IMG/VR virus record: IMGVR_UViG_3300043409_000928
Coordinates: 221,305-285,304 of that record
Direction: 5' to 3' (one strand)
DNA: 64,000 nucleotides
Part shown: positions 2,783-49,877 of the stretch, one piece after another
Numbering within the stretch: position 1 is the first letter of the stretch
Layout: the number at the start of each line of letters is the position of its first letter
Notes under the pieces: generated by a model
Told to the model about the DNA's origin: nothing
The model's input: the letters and a program-made list of their open reading frames with translations, nothing else
Database searches by the model: none
Translations under genes and position numbers: made by a program

Positions 2783-5700
2783 CTAATTAACCAATAATTT
2801 GGCTATCTCATTGCGATACTTAGCCAGCATGATTCGAGTTTTGTTTGCTTTTTCAACTGCACCAGGTGTAGCGGCTTTATCAAACTTGCTGGAATTGATT
2901 ACTTTGTCTAATTTTTCTGCGTATACACGGGAGATTTTCTGCATAAAGTCTTGACTGTTGGCAATGGAATCCAGTGCTCCTGTGCCAAATAGTTCAGCAG
3001 TTTCAAAGTCTGTGGCCATGGCATGAATTGTTTTGACAATGTCACTCAATCGCTGTTCGTCTTTGAGCCCACCGTGTTGCGCCAAGTTGCCCGGCACAAC
3101 GGGCTTGGTGCCGTGTGCCAATTGATAGTAATAGGAATACATGTCCCCGCCCCAATTGTGCGGATCAATGCTTACTGTGCTCAATTGCGTGTCTTTGCTT
3201 TGACGGAAGCTGACTGGTTGCCCGCCACGTGTCTTAACTTGTACGCCTTGTATGCCAAAGCTCATGTTTAATACTTCAGCAACGCTACTCATTAGGCTGG
3301 TGCTGATAACACCCTTGACACGATATTCTGGTGCTAGTGCTCGTGCCCAATCGGCATGTTCGTTATAGGTGTAAATTAAATCAACCTGTATGGGACCTGC
3401 GCTGGTATCCATGATAACATTGGTACCGTTGCTGGTATTGTATTCAGTGTGGCTGTCTGCAAACGACTTTACAGCATCTGCATACTCACTGGTGCGTCGG
3501 GCGGCACCTACACCCTCTCTGCTGTGAATATAGCACACAACATCTACATCACCGTATTCACGAGTAGGATCTGCTGTTAGGTCACGCTTGTAATAGGTAC
3601 CGGACCCAACAGGCTTGCCCATTCTAATTTCAACATCCAGTTCATTCTCAGCTTGCCAAGCATTAAATTCTCTTTCAAAGTGATCCAGCACATTGATTGC
3701 TTCTTCGATCACATGCGGAGTAATCACAGTATTTTGGGTGGCGGCACTGGCCCAGCCACCTTCTGTGATTGATTCGGTCTTCGGAGCCTGTTGTTCTTTA
3801 TACCATTCCCAAGCTTGATTGTTTATTTCTCTGCCAACTGTTCTTCTATAGTAACCTATAAGGCCCACTAGTTTTTGAGTTTCATCCCATACGGCTGAAG
3901 CGTCTTTACCAAACCACGGCTTGAAATCATCACTCTGCGCCCATTCTTTACAATGCTGTCTAAGTTTACTACCATCTGGATCATATGCTTGCCATGCTCT
4001 ACTGCCGGCCAACTCTACATCCAAGTTATCAAACAGGGTTTGTTCAATCAAGGCAGGTGTAATTACTCCTGATTCTTTTTTGTTGTCGATAGTCCGGAGT
4101 TGTTTGATAACTCTTGGATCTAATACTACACCCTGCGTTGGTTCATTGTAGGCAATCCAACCGTGGCCAGGGTCGAACACACTGGTAAAGCCCAAGTCTC
4201 TAAGCACCTTGTTCCAGCGAACAATATTGGTTTCATCACTCTTGCCTAATCTGCTTAAACAATCGTAGATGAACCAGTATGGTGTACCATCGAATTCATC
4301 TTCTTCAGCTGCCTGTTGCATTATTTCTTCTGAACAATACTGACTTAATGCTTGTTTTAATTTGGCACTATCAACTTGTGTTTCTTTTGTCATTTCACCT
4401 GAACGGTCATATTGAAACAACTGGATGTAGGGCATGTCTTCGCCCCATGGTAGTTTTTTACCACTGCGTGCCATGTCTACCGCATAGCCTAAAGGATAAA
4501 AGTAAATGCCTTTAGGAGTATCTTCACTAATACCTACTTGCGGGTTGATACCTAGCTTGGGTTCTGCTGTCATACTGATAGCCCAATTCTTAATGTCGCC
4601 CAAGGTCTTAGCAACAGCCTGCAACTCTTTCATACCTGACGCTGGCCGTGTATTTTGATCTGGATTAGCTCTTGCTTCTGGCAACTGTGCTGATTCATTT
4701 AGTGCAGAATCTGCAAACCAAGGGTCTATGATTACCAGCTGACCATTCTTTCTTTGCATTACATTTTCTGTATGCAAGTCCCAGCCAAACTTGTTTATCC
4801 TACCTGCCTTGTACAGTATCTGCATAACACCATACAATGTATGAAGCTCTTTGAACTTTGAATTATCATCTGCAAATGTCAAGTCTTGCCAGTACTTGGC
4901 CAGGTTGGCGGCCTGTCTTGGATTGTACTCCGTCCAGGTATCAGCCAACCCCAGTGCATGGTCAACTGCGTCCCAGGATTCATCGCCGGCTACAAAATCA
5001 CTAAAGAACCAGACCACACCTTCATTGAATGAATTTTTCTTGATAGGACTCAATCGTTCCATGTCAATTTGTGTGTACTCTCGGTCCAGTACGCTGATTT
5101 TATTATGTTCATTGATCACTGGCAAGCATTCCAAGTTCTGATGTGCCAGGCAGAATTCATAAAACTTGTTGAATACTTGTTCGGCTTGACTGCCAGGATC
5201 TGGCATTAATATTTTAATAATGTGACCTTTGTTTTTGGCCCACACAGTTGAATCGGCACCTGAGCCTACCTGCTTGTAACCCAATGCTGTAAATTCTTTT
5301 TCAATTTGGTCAGCATGTGCTGTGCCTGTTTCTGCTTCCGCCACACCTTGTGGGTTGCCTAATCTCCTAACAGGAATTTTATATTGTTGTATCAGGCTGT
5401 CAATCTCTGGCGGAATGTCGGCAGGCAATACAATTTCTTTAATTTTCCAATTGTCAACCAACACTTCGTGATGGGTTGACGTATCCATACTTAAAGTGGG
5501 ATCAATTTGCCCTGGTCGGCTAACATATTTTTGTTGTCCTCGTTGTCCTGCAGTCATTTTATATTGATCTGACCCCAAATCTGCACGCCCACCAATTGTA
5601 ATATGACCGTCGAGTACAATACCTACGGTTGGATTAGATCCGCCGCCCCACCTATTTTTTCCTAAAGATTCAGCGTTTGGTGCTAGGTAGGCGCTTAGTT

Positions 5701-45108: not shown

Positions 45109-45438
45109 TCAACCAGGACTAAAACTACTTCCACAACCACATGTTGATTGAGCCTGTGGATTGGTGATTACAAAGCTGGCACCCATTTCATTTTCCTTAT
45201 AATCAATTGAAGCACCTTGGAGATATTGCATACTCATAGCATCAACTAAAATAACATGACCACCATCTAGCGGAATCTGAAAGTCATCTTCATTAATTTC
45301 TTCGTCAAATGTAAACCCATAACTCATTCCAGAGCATCCGCCGCCCTGTACAAAGGTCCTTAGATTAAGTTTGGGATTGTTTTCCTCTGCCAATAAATCG
45401 GCAACTTTTACTTTGCATTCTACTGTTAATTCTATCAT
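45109..45438 (-). CDS. erpA: A-type Fe-S carrier (ErpA/IscA)
   Basis: [31 protein letters not shown]. Confidence 0.9.
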
Positions 45439-45941: not shown

Positions 45942-47078
45942 TCAAACAAGTGCTTTTAGCCTATCAATAAAACTTAGATAGTATGGTGGTAAGGACTGCA
46001 CCTTGGCCAGTTGATTGTATTTTGTGATCCAATCTAACAAATTTTGAATCCTAATTTTGTCTGGTGGGTGAGACGTTGTAATTTGCGGCTTGATAAATTC
46101 TTCAAATTTGATGAAATAAGTTTTCCAGTGATGATCAAGTGAACTTGGCCAATTTGGTAGGAACTGATGTATGCTGTTACCAAAATTTGCAACACTGAAC
46201 ATCTGGGGTTGATTGACCATGTTAATTTTTAGTTTTACTTTAGCCAATAATCCTTCTTGATCCAACCAATGCAATATATTGATATGGTTTTCTATGTTCA
46301 ACATGCTTATACTGATAGATATAGTTACATCGGCATTTTTTGCAACCATTGCTTTTAGATTAGAACCAAATCTTTCAAAATTCAATCCGCCTCGAATAAA
46401 TTCACCTTCTTCACCAATGGCATCTAAACTGAATATTAAATTTATTACAAGCGGCGTATTAGCCTTAAGTCTGTCAATGTTTGATTCAAATTTGGTCTTG
46501 AAGTTACCTGAATAATTGCCATTGGTTATTACGCGGAGAGTAATTGCATTTGTCAATCCAATTGTTAGCATTGAATCAACAATTTTATTGAATGCTGGAT
46601 CAACACTAGGTTCGCCGCCATGTAGGTTGATATGATGTAGTGTATTTTGATGTTGTAAGATGAACGCCGAAAGTTTCCCCCAACTCACATCAAATAAATC
46701 TTCCTTGAAGGGATACTTGTTTGTCATTGATTGCCATACCGTACTTGAATATTCGCTACAAATGATGCAATGCATATTGCAGGTATCACCAAAGTCAATA
46801 TCAACTATGCCAGGTGGCTTTGGTTTTGTACGTAACATTTCAATAGTTGTTACACCCCCGTCAGTTAAGCGAAATGAAGTGCCGCCCATGGCTTCTTCTC
46901 TCCAACAAGAGCTACATGCTAGATGTTTTTTATTTTCTAGGAACGATTTCTTTACATCTTCAACTCGAACAATATTTGTTTCATATTTATTATATGTTGT
47001 TTTGCAACAGAACTTCCAGTCGTCAGTCCTAAGTCTAACAAATGTTTCTTCCCACGGATATAAACATGAATGATCCAT
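45942..47078 (-). CDS. Radical SAM protein with N-terminal twitch/SPASM-like cysteines
   Basis: CNMHCIIC (CxxxCxxC), GGEPS, TNG; extra C..P W, CC, CSSCW. Confidence 0.85.
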   Translation of the reverse strand: MDHSCLYPWEETFVRLRTDDWKFCCKTTYNKYETNIVRVEDVKKSFLENKKHLACSSCWREEAMGGTSFRLTDGGVTTIEMLRTKPKPPGIVDIDFGDTCNMHCIICSEYSSTVWQSMTNKYPFKEDLFDVSWGKLSAFILQHQNTLHHINLHGGEPSVDPAFNKIVDSMLTIGLTNAITLRVITNGNYSGNFKTKFESNIDRLKANTPLVINLIFSLDAIGEEGEFIRGGLNFERFGSNLKAMVAKNADVTISISISMLNIENHINILHWLDQEGLLAKVKLKINMVNQPQMFSVANFGNSIHQFLPNWPSSLDHHWKTYFIKFEEFIKPQITTSHPPDKIRIQNLLDWITKYNQLAKVQSLPPYYLSFIDRLKALV

Positions 47079-47079
47079 T

Positions 47080-47922
47080 TTAGTTTACTTGTATGCCGGC
47101 CAATAACCAACCACCAGAGGATTTTGACTTGGTCATGTTCCAAACTTCTTCGAATGCCTCAGCTTCTGCCCCCACGGTGTCTTGTATTGTGCCTGTAAAT
47201 TCCACACTGGCTATGTAATTGACATCAGTTTCTTCTATGCCCAACATTTTCACTGTCAATGATATCACCGCTGTTCTATATACCTGGGTAGCATCGCGAG
47301 ATGCAATTTGTTGTTGGATCTCCGTCAACATGGTATCTGTCATCATACTGCCTAGGGTGGTGATATCTGCCCGGTCCCATGCGCCTTGTAACAACACGAA
47401 GTTTTGTTTGGCGGCAGATTCGAAACCTGCTACATCAAACCCTGCAGGAATGGTCCAAGTGGGGGCCAGCGCAGATCCAATCATTGAACCACCTGAGAAC
47501 CGTGTGGGTTGATCAATTACAGCATTGGTGCCAGCGCCTTGATAAGCAAGGTCAGGTGAACTGGCCATCATACGCCGACGCATGAACCAACCTATTGCTC
47601 CTAACACCACAGCACCAATCAACAGCGCCATCATAATATTGCCAAATGCCTCACCCATGCCCAGACTGCTGGCTAACCAAGCCAGACCCAAGCCTGCCGC
47701 CAGTCCACCCAACATTGCACCCCATGGACGACTAGGTGTTGGTGCAGGTGCCGCGGTTGGTGGTGTAGCTTGTGCCGGAGGTGCGGCCTGTTTTTTAGTC
47801 ACATTAGAACTTTGTTGGCCCACGCTTTTGCCGCCGCCCATGCGTTTATTACCGGCTTCGGCAATCACACTGGCAAACCCCACGATGCTTATTAATAAAA
47901 TTGCAATAAACTTTTTCATATT
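47080..47922 (-). CDS. Tim44-like domain protein with signal peptide
   Basis: KRMGGGKSVG, GGLAAGLGL, FVLLQGAWD, EEVWNM..WLLAGIQ. Confidence 0.85.
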   Translation of the reverse strand, partial: NMKKFIAILLISIVGFASVIAEAGNKRMGGGKSVGQQSSNVTKKQAAPPAQATPPTAAPAPTPSRPWGAMLGGLAAGLGLAWLASSLGMGEAFGNIMMALLIGAVVLGAIGWFMRRRMMASSPDLAYQGAGTNAVIDQPTRFSGGSMIGSALAPTWTIPAGFDVAGFESAAKQNFVLLQGAWDRADITTLGSMMTDTMLTEIQQQIASRDATQVYRTAVISLTVKMLGIEETDVNYIASVEFTGTIQDTVGAEAEAFEEVWNMTKSKSSGGWLLAGIQVN

Positions 47923-48568
47923 ATCTCCTTGATGCAAGTACTATCTTGCAAATATGCTCCAATCGCTCTATGTGTTCATAGGCTCTCCATGGACTTGTGT
48001 CAATGGCAACTACTCCATGTCCCTTTATGCCCACAATATCAAAAGCAATATTGCCAGCCGTATCCAATTGCAACTGCCGATGACATTGATCCGCAAGCTC
48101 TTGACTAATAGGAGGCACATCGCCTACATTGGGTGCTACCCGAGTATATCTATTTAATTCTGGAAAGTCTGCACTCACTGTGCTTAGATCAATGCCGGCG
48201 TGCATGGCCGCAATACAGTAAGTGGGGTGAACATGTACAACCACACGAACCTCTCCGGTGTGTTGTCCCATTTCTTTTTGCAATCCAAAATGCAATGGCA
48301 GTTCTCCACTGGGCTTGAGGTTGGCACTGATATCAGTATATGTCAACTCAGTGCTGGCATGATACAGCCTAGGAGGTTGATCATAATAACCTTTCTCAAT
48401 GCCAATCTTCTTAAACTGATCTGGCTGTAGAGTTTGTTTACGAACACCACTTGGAGTGATATAGAAGTGATCACGGTCGTGATGTCGTATGCTAACATTG
48501 CCATCACGACTGGTAATCCAATTACGCTTATAAGCGTCTTCTAATACTTCACAAATGGTTTCTAACAT
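47921..48568 (-). CDS. Class II aldolase/adducin family protein
   Basis: RDGNVS, ITPSG, PSGELPLH, HVHP, GHGVVA. Confidence 0.88.
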   Translation of the reverse strand: MLETICEVLEDAYKRNWITSRDGNVSIRHHDRDHFYITPSGVRKQTLQPDQFKKIGIEKGYYDQPPRLYHASTELTYTDISANLKPSGELPLHFGLQKEMGQHTGEVRVVVHVHPTYCIAAMHAGIDLSTVSADFPELNRYTRVAPNVGDVPPISQELADQCHRQLQLDTAGNIAFDIVGIKGHGVVAIDTSPWRAYEHIERLEHICKIVLASRR

Positions 48569-49077
48569 TATGCAAACAAGTCCTCATTCCATTCACGGTG
48601 TCCTTCACGGAACGCCATGTTACTTTGTGTTTCACGAACTTCTACACGATAGCACCAAAGTCGTTGTGCTTCACCGTGCCCTAGGTAATCTGGAATATAC
48701 ACACCGTTGACATACTTGTAAAGCTGATCTGCTAATCCTTCACAACCCAGTTTGGGCAGGATTGTCAGTTTGGCCAACTTGCGCTGTTCCATCTCTTTGT
48801 AAAAGGCCAGTTCAGGATCGTCCTCTGCTACCAGTAGGGTGTGATCAAATTGGCTTTCCAATACACCTTTGAGTTCTTTGAGGCCACCATAATCGGCCGC
48901 CCAGTTGCGAGCATCCAGATAGTCGGTACCAAAGTAAAACTTCATACTAAAACTGTATCCATGAATTAAATTACAGTGACTATCGGCCCTCCACTGTCTG
49001 TACGCACATGGAAATGCGTCATGATACTCTTTGGTGCTGGTGTACTTGTATTGTACGGGTTGTAATAAATTTGCCAT
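48568..49077 (-). CDS. queD: QueD/6-pyruvoyltetrahydropterin synthase family protein
   Basis: CNLIHGYS, FDHTLLV, GCEGLA, VEVRET; SD AAGGAG supports start at 49077. Confidence 0.8.
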   Translation of the reverse strand: MANLLQPVQYKYTSTKEYHDAFPCAYRQWRADSHCNLIHGYSFSMKFYFGTDYLDARNWAADYGGLKELKGVLESQFDHTLLVAEDDPELAFYKEMEQRKLAKLTILPKLGCEGLADQLYKYVNGVYIPDYLGHGEAQRLWCYRVEVRETQSNMAFREGHREWNEDLFA

Positions 49078-49150
49078 TGTTATCTCCTTTAGATTTAGCA
49101 ATGACATGCAGAATATTTAAAGAGGGATGAATGCCGAAAAGTCCTCTAAC
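49078..49150 (-). promoter_or_regulatory. Pseudoknot-like 5' leader (candidate riboswitch) of queD-like gene
   Basis: P1 AGAGG/CCTCT; loop GGCAT pairs with downstream ATGTC near SD. Confidence 0.35.
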
Positions 49151-49166
49151 TATACTTATCAAAGCG

Positions 49167-49877
49167 TTAGCGTGTCTTTAACTCTTTAATACCTAGTTTG
49201 GAAAAGGATCGTTGTACTCCAATGAGTTGACTCCAACAATCCCATAATGCATGGTGTGCCGCACCTTGTGGTCTCTCTAGTCCAGGCACCAATGCATATA
49301 GTGTACGAGCGTCACGGGCTTGCCAGTAACTCCAGGCCACTCCTCGCTTGAGTTCACGACTAAAGTGCTCAAGTATGTTCAAGTCAAAGCCTGTACCGTT
49401 GGCCCAGATAGCATCAACGCCGCCACACCACTTGTGAAAGTCTCGTAGCACATCGCGAATATCATGCCTGTCATCTTCTGCAAATGCTTCAGCACGAACT
49501 TCTTCACTCTGATTGCCCCACCAAGCAAGGGTGTCGTCGTCAATGATATGATCAAGCCCTTCAAAACTTTCAAAACTGACACGTCGATAAAATGTGTCCA
49601 TCTTTTCCATTGGGTTGTTGACATCATCTGCCCATGGATTAAAACGAATAGCGCCAATAGTAAGCATTAGGCTATTTGGTTTAGTGCCAAGTGTTTCAAG
49701 GTCAACCATAATATGGTTGCCAGGTTTACCAAAATTAAAAGTCGTTGCCATCGGTAACATCCTTTTTCTTTGAAAGAGCCCAACTTCCATTACCGTTATC
49801 GTGCCACTCAAGAGTGTCGCCTTCTTTCCAACCAGTTTGTGCCAATAGATCATCGGGAAACTGTAGAATGCATTCAC
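49167..49877 (-). CDS. DEDDh 3'-5' exonuclease
   Basis: MVDLETLG, WANGTGFD, HHALWDC; true start probably downstream of the track start. Confidence 0.8.
   Translation of the reverse strand: MNAFYSFPMIYWHKLVGKKATLLSGTITVMEVGLFQRKRMLPMATTFNFGKPGNHIMVDLETLGTKPNSLMLTIGAIRFNPWADDVNNPMEKMDTFYRRVSFESFEGLDHIIDDDTLAWWGNQSEEVRAEAFAEDDRHDIRDVLRDFHKWCGGVDAIWANGTGFDLNILEHFSRELKRGVAWSYWQARDARTLYALVPGLERPQGAAHHALWDCWSQLIGVQRSFSKLGIKELKTR

Follow-up and report, generated by a model that had tools for sequence, protein, structure and literature searches.

A widely conserved RNA pseudoknot in the leader of a phage QueD-like gene matches no catalogued RNA family and resembles a new, putatively ON-switching riboswitch class

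The identification of a 70-nt leader that folds as an H-type pseudoknot, and that sits in versions of the same architecture upstream of QueD/PTPS-like genes in more than 240 phage contigs from lake metagenomes, is the principal finding of this study. The leader was examined first in a 64,000-nt stretch of DNA (hereafter the window), which forms the last 64 kb of a 285,304-bp IMG/VR virus record estimated to be 86% complete, and which therefore derives from a jumbo phage; near-identical DNA occurs in freshwater and lake metagenomes from 18 studies. Both helices of the pseudoknot covary, it matches no Rfam 15 family, and it has features that make it look like a new riboswitch class acting to switch translation on, although the latter is inferred from sequence alone. 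The original prediction had described, from the single sequence, a riboswitch-like H-type pseudoknot with a 5-bp P1 and a loop GGCAU able to pair with AUGUC near the Shine-Dalgarno (SD) sequence, placed before a queD-like operon, and had inferred a new ligand-sensing RNA for a pterin or 7-deazaguanine intermediate. As an observation this proved correct to the base, the loop-to-tail helix including one G.U pair. Its interpretation is partly supported: the pseudoknot is real, under selection, specific to the QueD-like gene and distinct from preQ1-I, preQ1-II and SAM-II, whereas sensing of a small molecule remains an inference, the ‘operon’ is not conserved, and P2 does not sequester the SD.

The leader occupies most of an 89-nt intergenic region on the minus strand, between an Rv2179c-like exonuclease gene and a gene for a 169-aa PTPS/QueD-like protein (Table 1). 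The product of the latter is a T-fold enzyme homologue, and no RNA-binding domain was detected in it by the Pfam and PHROG profile matches; a sequence search of the PDB with the protein found nothing. The single sequence does not by itself reveal the fold, as its minimum free energy (MFE) is no better than that of shuffled sequences (z-score -0.08) and the MFE structure does not even contain P1. The MFE structure instead pairs the P1 3' strand with the SD (CCUCUUU with AAAGGAG), but leaders with an AGCGG-type P1 cannot form this pairing and it is therefore not conserved.

Table 1. Features of the QueD-like leader and its surroundings (positions in the window; all on the minus strand)
Feature	Position	Sequence	Observations
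Exonuclease-like gene (Rv2179c-like)	49877-49167		Stop codon TAA at 49169-49167
Promoter-like motif	49160-49153	GATAAGTA	Just upstream of P1; contains TAAGTA (49158-49153)
P1 5' strand	49147-49143	AGAGG	Pairs with 49125-49121
Loop between P1 strands	49142-49126	ACUUUUCGGCAUUCAUC	Contains L1, the P2 5' strand and L2
L1	49142-49136	ACUUUUC	First base variable in the family; in alignments A1 and A3 the second nucleotide (C) is invariant and the third (U) at least 90% conserved; all length variation of the aptamer falls here
P2 5' strand (pseudoknot)	49135-49131	GGCAU	Pairs with 49107-49103; all five pairs change on both sides across the family
L2	49130-49126	UCAUC	C49126, immediately 5' of the P1 3' strand, is invariant in A1, A2, A3 and A4; family form UCAYC
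P1 3' strand	49125-49121	CCUCU	
L3	49120-49108	UUAAAUAUUCUGC	A-rich part, then near-invariant YUCYGC; in A1, A at three positions plus U and C are invariant and UGC is at least 90% conserved; family form WUAYAAAYUCUGC
P2 3' strand	49107-49103	AUGUC	Directly after CUGC; shared with the start-masking helix
Start-masking helix, 5' strand	49106-49099	UGUCAUUG	Four bases belong to the P2 3' strand; helix seen in the centroid fold of the window leader and in the platform MFE (-9.8 kcal/mol) of locus L002, whose leader is identical over this stretch
SD sequence	49090-49084	AAAGGAG	6 nt before the ATG; conserved in the homologous leaders
Start-masking helix, 3' strand	49079-49072	CAAUGGCA	Start codon (49077-49075) and flanks
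QueD/PTPS-like gene (169 aa)	49077-48568		PF01242, E 1.6e-13; phrog_2389 ‘QueD-like’, E 3e-35; 42-56% identical to QueD genes of cultured phages
Class II aldolase/MtnB-like gene	48568-47921		PF00596, E 1.9e-27; ATG overlaps the QueD stop (TAATG); probably translationally coupled to QueD, and may be co-regulated; follows the QueD-like gene in only a few loci (cluster 25)

Conservation and covariation among homologous leaders, the absence of which had been named beforehand as grounds for rejecting the prediction, were established by comparison of three sets of loci. A protein-based search of IMG/VR returned 80 loci (L002-L081) encoding proteins 85-100% identical to that of the window, of which 69 carry the same leader with obvious compensatory changes, while the other 11 have no motif directly upstream of the gene or are cut at a contig end, the gene directly following another ORF in at least six of them. 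An RNA-pattern scan added 120 stretches (L082-L201), about 110 of which carry a complete or near-complete element; the ORF behind them is again PTPS-like, but is only 30-92% identical to that of the window and falls into several subfamilies. It is important to consider that this pattern fixes much of L2 and L3 and that our extraction required P1 complementarity, so that the 100% P1 pairing and the L3 invariance seen in this set are partly built in. Therefore, as an unbiased control, we fetched by protein alone 80 loci (L243-L322) of a 149-aa subfamily about 40% identical to the window protein: the covariance model hits 56 of them at 35-65 bits, about 20 more carry recognizable variants, three are cut off at a contig end and two lack the motif; about 78 of 80 carry a version. 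The alignments of the protein-selected sets, A1 (47 distinct leaders of the first set) and A4, are the fair measure of conservation, and they show the same core as the remainder. As the MAFFT alignment A1 misplaces the P2 5' strand when the length of L1 varies, a gapless alignment (A2) and a right-anchored alignment (A3) were used in its place.

Across the family P1 takes six sequence forms (AGCGG, AGAGG, AGTGG, ATCGG, ACCGG and TGCGG), each with a matching 3' strand, and one protein-selected leader (L299) has AGACG/CGUCU; three of the five P1 pairs covary, RNAalifold recovers P1 on its own, and a few leaders (L091, L108, L125 and L137) have one P1 mismatch. P2, of 4-5 bp (7 in one subgroup), takes more than 15 forms, among them GGCAU/AUGCC, GGCAU/AUGUC, GACAU/AUGUC, GACGC/GUGUC, GACAA/UUGUC, GACUU/AAGUC, GGUG/CACC, GGCG/CGCC, GGCA/UGCC, GGCU/AGCC, GAAC/GUUC and UAGU/ACUA. 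When P2 was counted in one fixed register for all 132 distinct sequences of the gapless alignment, 77.4% of cells were paired against 53.1% in shuffles, about a fifth of cells thus being unpaired, and the covariation score was 0.645 against 0.267 (0 of 500 shuffles as high), with registers slid by 1-3 columns giving 0.10-0.21. P1 and P2 together scored 0.455 against 0.150, and swapping loops and tails between sequences lowered the mean contiguous pairing from 3.71 to 3.07+-0.09 bp (0 of 2000 as high). The conserved unpaired nucleotides include the C just 5' of the P1 3' strand and A-Y-U-C-Y-G-C just before the P2 3' strand. Some leaders have a shorter form, with a P1 of 3-4 bp and an L3 of 10-11 nt that keeps AAUUCUGC; the joint shortening of L3 and P1 is expected if L3 runs along P1, as in a true H-type fold.

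The element is tied to one gene. A covariance model of the element finds exactly one copy in the window's genome (58 bits, E 5e-18), with nothing else in the 285 kb scoring above 13 bits and no motif at the phage's own folE locus, and exactly one in each of five related phage records of 200-353 kb, three of which are at least 98% complete. A PTPS-like gene is the first gene after the motif in 168 of 183 loci and the second in 5 more, whereas genes further downstream are heterogeneous and include UvdE, radical SAM and B12-radical SAM enzymes, a methyltransferase, an epimerase and a DAHP/KDO8P-synthase-family (PF00793) enzyme, so that the RNA and the QueD-like gene move together as one unit. A pattern scan of one genome for each of 185,579 prokaryote species gave five true hits (42-59 bits), all on 4-8 kb MAG contigs that are probably binned phage fragments and none in an isolate chromosome; hits in Idiomarina (17 bits) have a broken P1. 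Four cultured phages with the nearest QueD homologues (ACP17, R5C, X1 and Me-ZS1) have no leader and no motif. As far as this pattern can see, the class is confined to uncultured freshwater phages.

Just upstream of P1 lies one of two promoter-like motifs, either a sigma-70-like TTGACx-17-TATAAT that ends a few to about 15 nt before P1, or ATAA[GA]TA, which is present in 73 of 151 distinct upstream regions and mostly starts 12-18 nt before P1. This implies that transcription starts at or near P1 and places the element at the inferred 5' end of the mRNA. Logan contigs from four metatranscriptome libraries in four studies cover the leader, but they also run 150-190 nt or more into the upstream gene and so can neither show a transcription start nor prove transcription. 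We considered whether the conservation might reflect DNA-level signals only, with the P1 hairpin as terminator of the upstream gene and the conserved L3/P3 region as a promoter (TTTACA-17-TATAAT in many leaders), since one large subgroup has a near-consensus sigma-70 promoter overlapping L3 and the loop of the SD hairpin. However, loop-to-tail covariation has no meaning for a promoter spacer, L3 is equally conserved in subgroups without any TATAAT, including the window, the 5-bp stem with its 13-19 nt loop has no T-run, and promoter-like motifs lie upstream of P1. We therefore regard this reading as very unlikely.

The P2 3' strand has a second, predicted stronger partner. In 128 of 132 distinct leaders it forms, together with the bases that follow it, a 6-8 bp helix with the SD (71 leaders) or the AUG (58 leaders), with a mean length of 6.48 bp against 5.76+-0.07 for permuted partners and 4.66 for shuffled tails. 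The partner changes across the family but the principle holds: window-type leaders pair CAUUG with CAAUG, a second group pairs GUCGUC or GUCAUC with GAUGGC or GAUGAC, one leader (L084) pairs CAUA with UAUG, a few pair GUCUUC with GGAGAC, and the largest group pairs CCUAUG with CAUAGG of the SD. The expression platform alone folds at a mean of -8.0 kcal/mol and masks the SD or AUG in 131 of 132 leaders, whereas the P2 duplex alone is -4.7 kcal/mol. When the P2 strands were withheld from other pairing, the computed unpaired probability of the AUG rose from 0.03 to 0.53 in window-type leaders and from 0.02 to 0.38 in the second group, and that of the SD rose from 0.39 to 0.66 in the largest group. 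Pseudoknot formation and masking of the ribosome site would thus exclude each other, although P2 shares only 2-4 nt with the masking helix and partial coexistence is conceivable.

That the leader is a real, selected, gene-specific cis-regulatory RNA pseudoknot is close to certain. Our current working hypothesis, held with moderate confidence, is that the ribosome site is masked by default, that a small molecule bound at the P1/P2 junction stabilizes the pseudoknot and so pulls the P2 3' strand away from the masking helix, and that the leader is therefore a translational ON riboswitch; a riboswitch of any kind, including a divergent preQ1-I member, is somewhat more probable. The structure, its covariation, its association with one gene, the competing helix and the absence from Rfam rest on the analysis itself, whereas binding of a metabolite, the ON direction, which has computational support only, and the class of ligand are inferred. 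The invariant unpaired nucleotides, the competing expression-platform helix, the single copy per genome and the retention across divergent protein subfamilies are hallmarks of a riboswitch. The proposed direction is opposite to that implied by the analogy with preQ1-I and SAM-II in the original prediction, and an ON switch on a biosynthetic gene is less common than an OFF switch. A protein-binding translational operator, recognized by the QueD-like protein itself or by another phage protein, so that protein binding rather than a metabolite would set the balance between the pseudoknot and the masking helix, is a less likely alternative which the structure, the single copy per genome and the competing helix would fit equally well, and phage leader pseudoknots acting as protein operators are established (gp32 is summarized in PMC10690425). 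However, the RNA core is nearly fixed upstream of PTPS-like proteins of at least three subfamilies, 30-60% identical to each other, so that an autoregulatory protein surface would have to stay constant through that divergence; identity to the window protein itself falls to 30-40%, which favours an invariant small ligand over a co-evolving protein. In addition, no conserved second gene accompanies the motif, and an invariant unpaired C next to P1 and a fixed YUCYGC are typical of small-molecule pockets. A ligand-independent element, such as a 5'-terminal fold protecting the mRNA from decay, a thermometer or a translation tuner with the two folds in fixed equilibrium, would be consistent with the inferred position at the transcript's 5' end and with evidence that is computational only, but is also unlikely, as a stabilizing hairpin or thermometer does not need about 15 invariant unpaired nucleotides, a covarying pseudoknot and strict association with one enzyme gene.

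The pathway context suggests what such a ligand might be. Homologues 45-56% identical to the window protein sit next to FolE in all four cultured phages examined, two of which, Microcystis phage Me-ZS1 and Dinoroseobacter phage R5C, also have QueC nearby, with Me-ZS1 additionally having QueE and TGT; the gene therefore belongs to the QueD family of that pathway. The window's phage (G000) has FolE (G000:C1:181968-182483) and a divergent QueE-like radical SAM gene, for which five QueE models score 32-42 bits, below their cut-offs, but searches gave no QueC and no TGT/DpdA match. The five related records all have FolE and no TGT, with only partial hits to QueC, and in one of them FolE lies immediately upstream of the motif. 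We hypothesize that the ligand has a guanine-like face and comes from the route GTP to dihydroneopterin triphosphate to CPH4 to 7-deazaguanine; the invariant C would fit a pterin, a 7-deazaguanine or a guanine nucleotide, and an ON switch before QueD would make most sense for the substrate of the enzyme or a precursor, namely dihydroneopterin triphosphate made by the phage FolE, or GTP. A more speculative possibility, which we consider less likely than not, is a phage-specific class sensing a pterin-pathway intermediate, such as 7,8-dihydroneopterin triphosphate, the product of the phage's own FolE, or else CPH4, CDG or preQ0, and on binding turning on translation of the QueD-like enzyme, as a feed-forward metabolic switch in jumbo phages that lack the DpdA and QueC genes otherwise expected for 7-deazaguanine DNA modification; this would add a new ligand to the riboswitch repertoire and point to an unrecognized use of the pathway by phages. 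New riboswitch classes with hundreds of representatives and clean pseudoknot covariation are now rare, and classes confined to phages rarer still. The putative aptamer is small (about 45 nt) and tied to one enzyme gene, so that the list of candidate ligands is short and directly testable. If it binds a pterin or a 7-deazaguanine precursor, it would show how phages time an auxiliary metabolic pathway through RNA and would give a compact natural ON-switch sensor for such compounds. As abundant lake jumbo phages keep FolE plus a QueD-like gene without QueC or DpdA, the motif also gives a handle on what those genes are for.

No family among the 4227 covariance models of Rfam 15 reaches its gathering score anywhere in the window, and searches at E<=10 of a 2.5-kb region and of 91-111 nt from three different leaders (the window, L003 and L005) returned only noise: Mu-gpT-DE at 11.3 bits (E 2), DUF805b at 8.3 bits, freshwater-2 at 14.4 bits (E 2.5-3), and preQ1-II (RF01054) at 13.7 bits (E 6.2) against a gathering score of 47, in an alignment driven by the SD and AUG only. 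SAM-II, SAM-V, THF-II (folE), NAD+-II (pnuC) and guanidine-III gave no match. Keyword and sequence-string searches of the literature found no description of the element, and a 2023 catalogue of more than 10,000 candidate structured RNAs from IMG/VR (PMC10690425) does not mention QueD, queuosine or riboswitches in its text, although a bare listing in its tables cannot be excluded.

The closest known fold is that of the preQ1-I riboswitch (RF00522; types I-III), likewise a small H-type pseudoknot in a 5' leader with a 5-bp P1 ending in G-C pairs, a short P2 and a conserved C at the 3' end of L2 directly before the P1 3' strand, which in preQ1-I is the specificity base and is 97% conserved in type III (PMC10622847). 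L3 also starts A-rich (UUACAAA, compared with UUAACAAAAC in the Tte riboswitch), and both are linked to the 7-deazaguanine pathway and to control of translation, the latter by inference for the phage leader. A divergent preQ1-I member, binding preQ1 or preQ0 through the conserved C and repressing translation, is nevertheless unlikely: RF00522 gave no hit even at E<=10 in any of the three leaders, the 13-nt L3 ends in five extra near-invariant nucleotides (UCUGC), the first L1 nucleotide is variable and is followed by a conserved C-U, L2 is UCAYC, the P2 3' strand lies 13 nt or more upstream of the SD rather than containing it, the competing helix implies ON rather than OFF, and the element was found only on phage contigs. 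We therefore do not assign it to preQ1-I. The SAM-II and SAM-V riboswitches share a classic H-type pseudoknot with long loops lying in the helix grooves and translational control, but in those classes the SD is inside the pseudoknot, giving OFF control, and the conserved nucleotides and gene context are unrelated. The THF-II riboswitch (folE motif, RF03111) likewise occupies the leader of a gene in the GTP-to-pterin pathway and has ligands with a 2-amino-4-oxo-pyrimidine face, yet it is a simple hairpin with an internal loop and no pseudoknot. Finally, the leader pseudoknot of phage T4 gene 32 is an H-type pseudoknot at the very 5' end of a phage mRNA that governs translation of the next gene, but it nucleates cooperative binding of its own ssDNA-binding protein and has no competing ribosome-binding-site helix, whereas here the downstream gene is that of a small metabolic enzyme of several divergent subfamilies.

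An in-frame ATG lies inside the P2 3' strand (AUGUC) of the leader, 30 nt upstream of the real start of the QueD-like gene, so that a mechanical ORF call gives a protein of 179 aa. However, relatives have CACC, CGCC or UGCC at this place, and the Shine-Dalgarno sequence serves the downstream ATG; the start at 49077 is the correct one. The positions of this and of the other features considered here are collected in the table below.

Coordinates of features in and around the QueD-like locus and in other records
Feature	Record	Position	Strand
In-frame ATG within the P2 3' strand	window	49105-49107	minus
ORF from the in-frame ATG (179 aa)	window	48568-49107	
Shine-Dalgarno sequence	window	49090-49084	
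QueD-like gene from the correct start (169 aa)	window	48568-49077	
285-aa protein with a Tim44-like domain	window	47080-47937	
Twitch-domain radical SAM protein and ErpA-like Fe-S carrier	window	45942-47078 and 45109-45438	
Region compared with RNA-library contigs	window	48300-49700	
FolE	G000 (whole phage record), C1	181968-182483	
QueE-like gene	L236	742-1611	minus
Near-consensus sigma-70 promoter leader	L003	2945-2985	
Weak match to model R1	L212 (Idiomarina MAG contig, 395 kb)	5648-5698	
Weak match to model R1	L214 (Idiomarina MAG contig, 203 kb)	5060-5110	

In the largest subgroup of leaders, the 'CCUAUG' group, which comprises the leader of locus L003 and about 70 similar leaders, the start of L3 (TTTACA) and the loop of the Shine-Dalgarno hairpin (TATAAT) form a near-consensus sigma-70 promoter with a 17-nt spacer. 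Such an internal promoter could produce a transcript without the putative aptamer, although the window's leader lacks it. A short subtype of the motif was also identified about 60 nt before the gene start in each of loci L278, L295, L301, L302, L304-L312, L317, L319 and L320, where it reads AGG-ACUU-GGCG-UCAAC-CCU-UCUAAUUCUGC-CGCC, with a P1 of 3-4 bp and an L3 of 10-11 nt. This subtype scores below 16 bits, or gives no match, with the covariance model of the motif (R1), and it usually follows a clear TTGACA-17-TATAAT promoter. When contigs from the RNA libraries of four runs (X15-X18) were compared with the window, loose ends at 49105 in two runs were found to continue as the reverse complement of a different aptamer subtype (...CCCGCUAUACAAACUCUGCC), indicating that phages with different leader subtypes but similar QueD N-termini coexist in the same lake samples. 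The only hits on chromosome-sized bacterial contigs were two weak R1 matches (17 bits) on Idiomarina MAG contigs, which keep UCAUCCC...ACAAACUCUGC but have a broken P1, and these are probably chance matches to the scan pattern.

The window's phage and its relatives G001-G005, all jumbo phages, encode FolE as well as the QueD-like gene, and the window's phage also has a divergent QueE-like gene. No TGT/DpdA match and no convincing QueC match was found in these genomes, even in three records that are at least 98% complete. The whole record of the window's phage encodes seven radical-SAM-domain ORFs, one of which, three genes after QueD, is a twitch-domain radical SAM protein (NF033640, 172 bits), and an ErpA-like Fe-S carrier (148 bits) lies nearby; this is an unusual load of Fe-S enzymes for a phage. 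Between the aldolase-like gene and the radical SAM gene lies a gene for a protein with a Tim44-like domain (PF04280, E 9.5e-16), the start of which overlaps the end of the aldolase-like gene by 17 nt.

The window's QueD-like protein (residues about 23-43) and the four subfamilies for which the full N-terminal region was inspected (149, 154, 160 and 184 aa; the proteins of loci L085, L094, L123 and L139) share S-H-C-x3-H-G-Y. However, the window protein has FPCAY at the place that appears to correspond to zinc-binding histidines in canonical QueD/PTPS, a difference that is only a tentative lead on altered chemistry relative to those enzymes.
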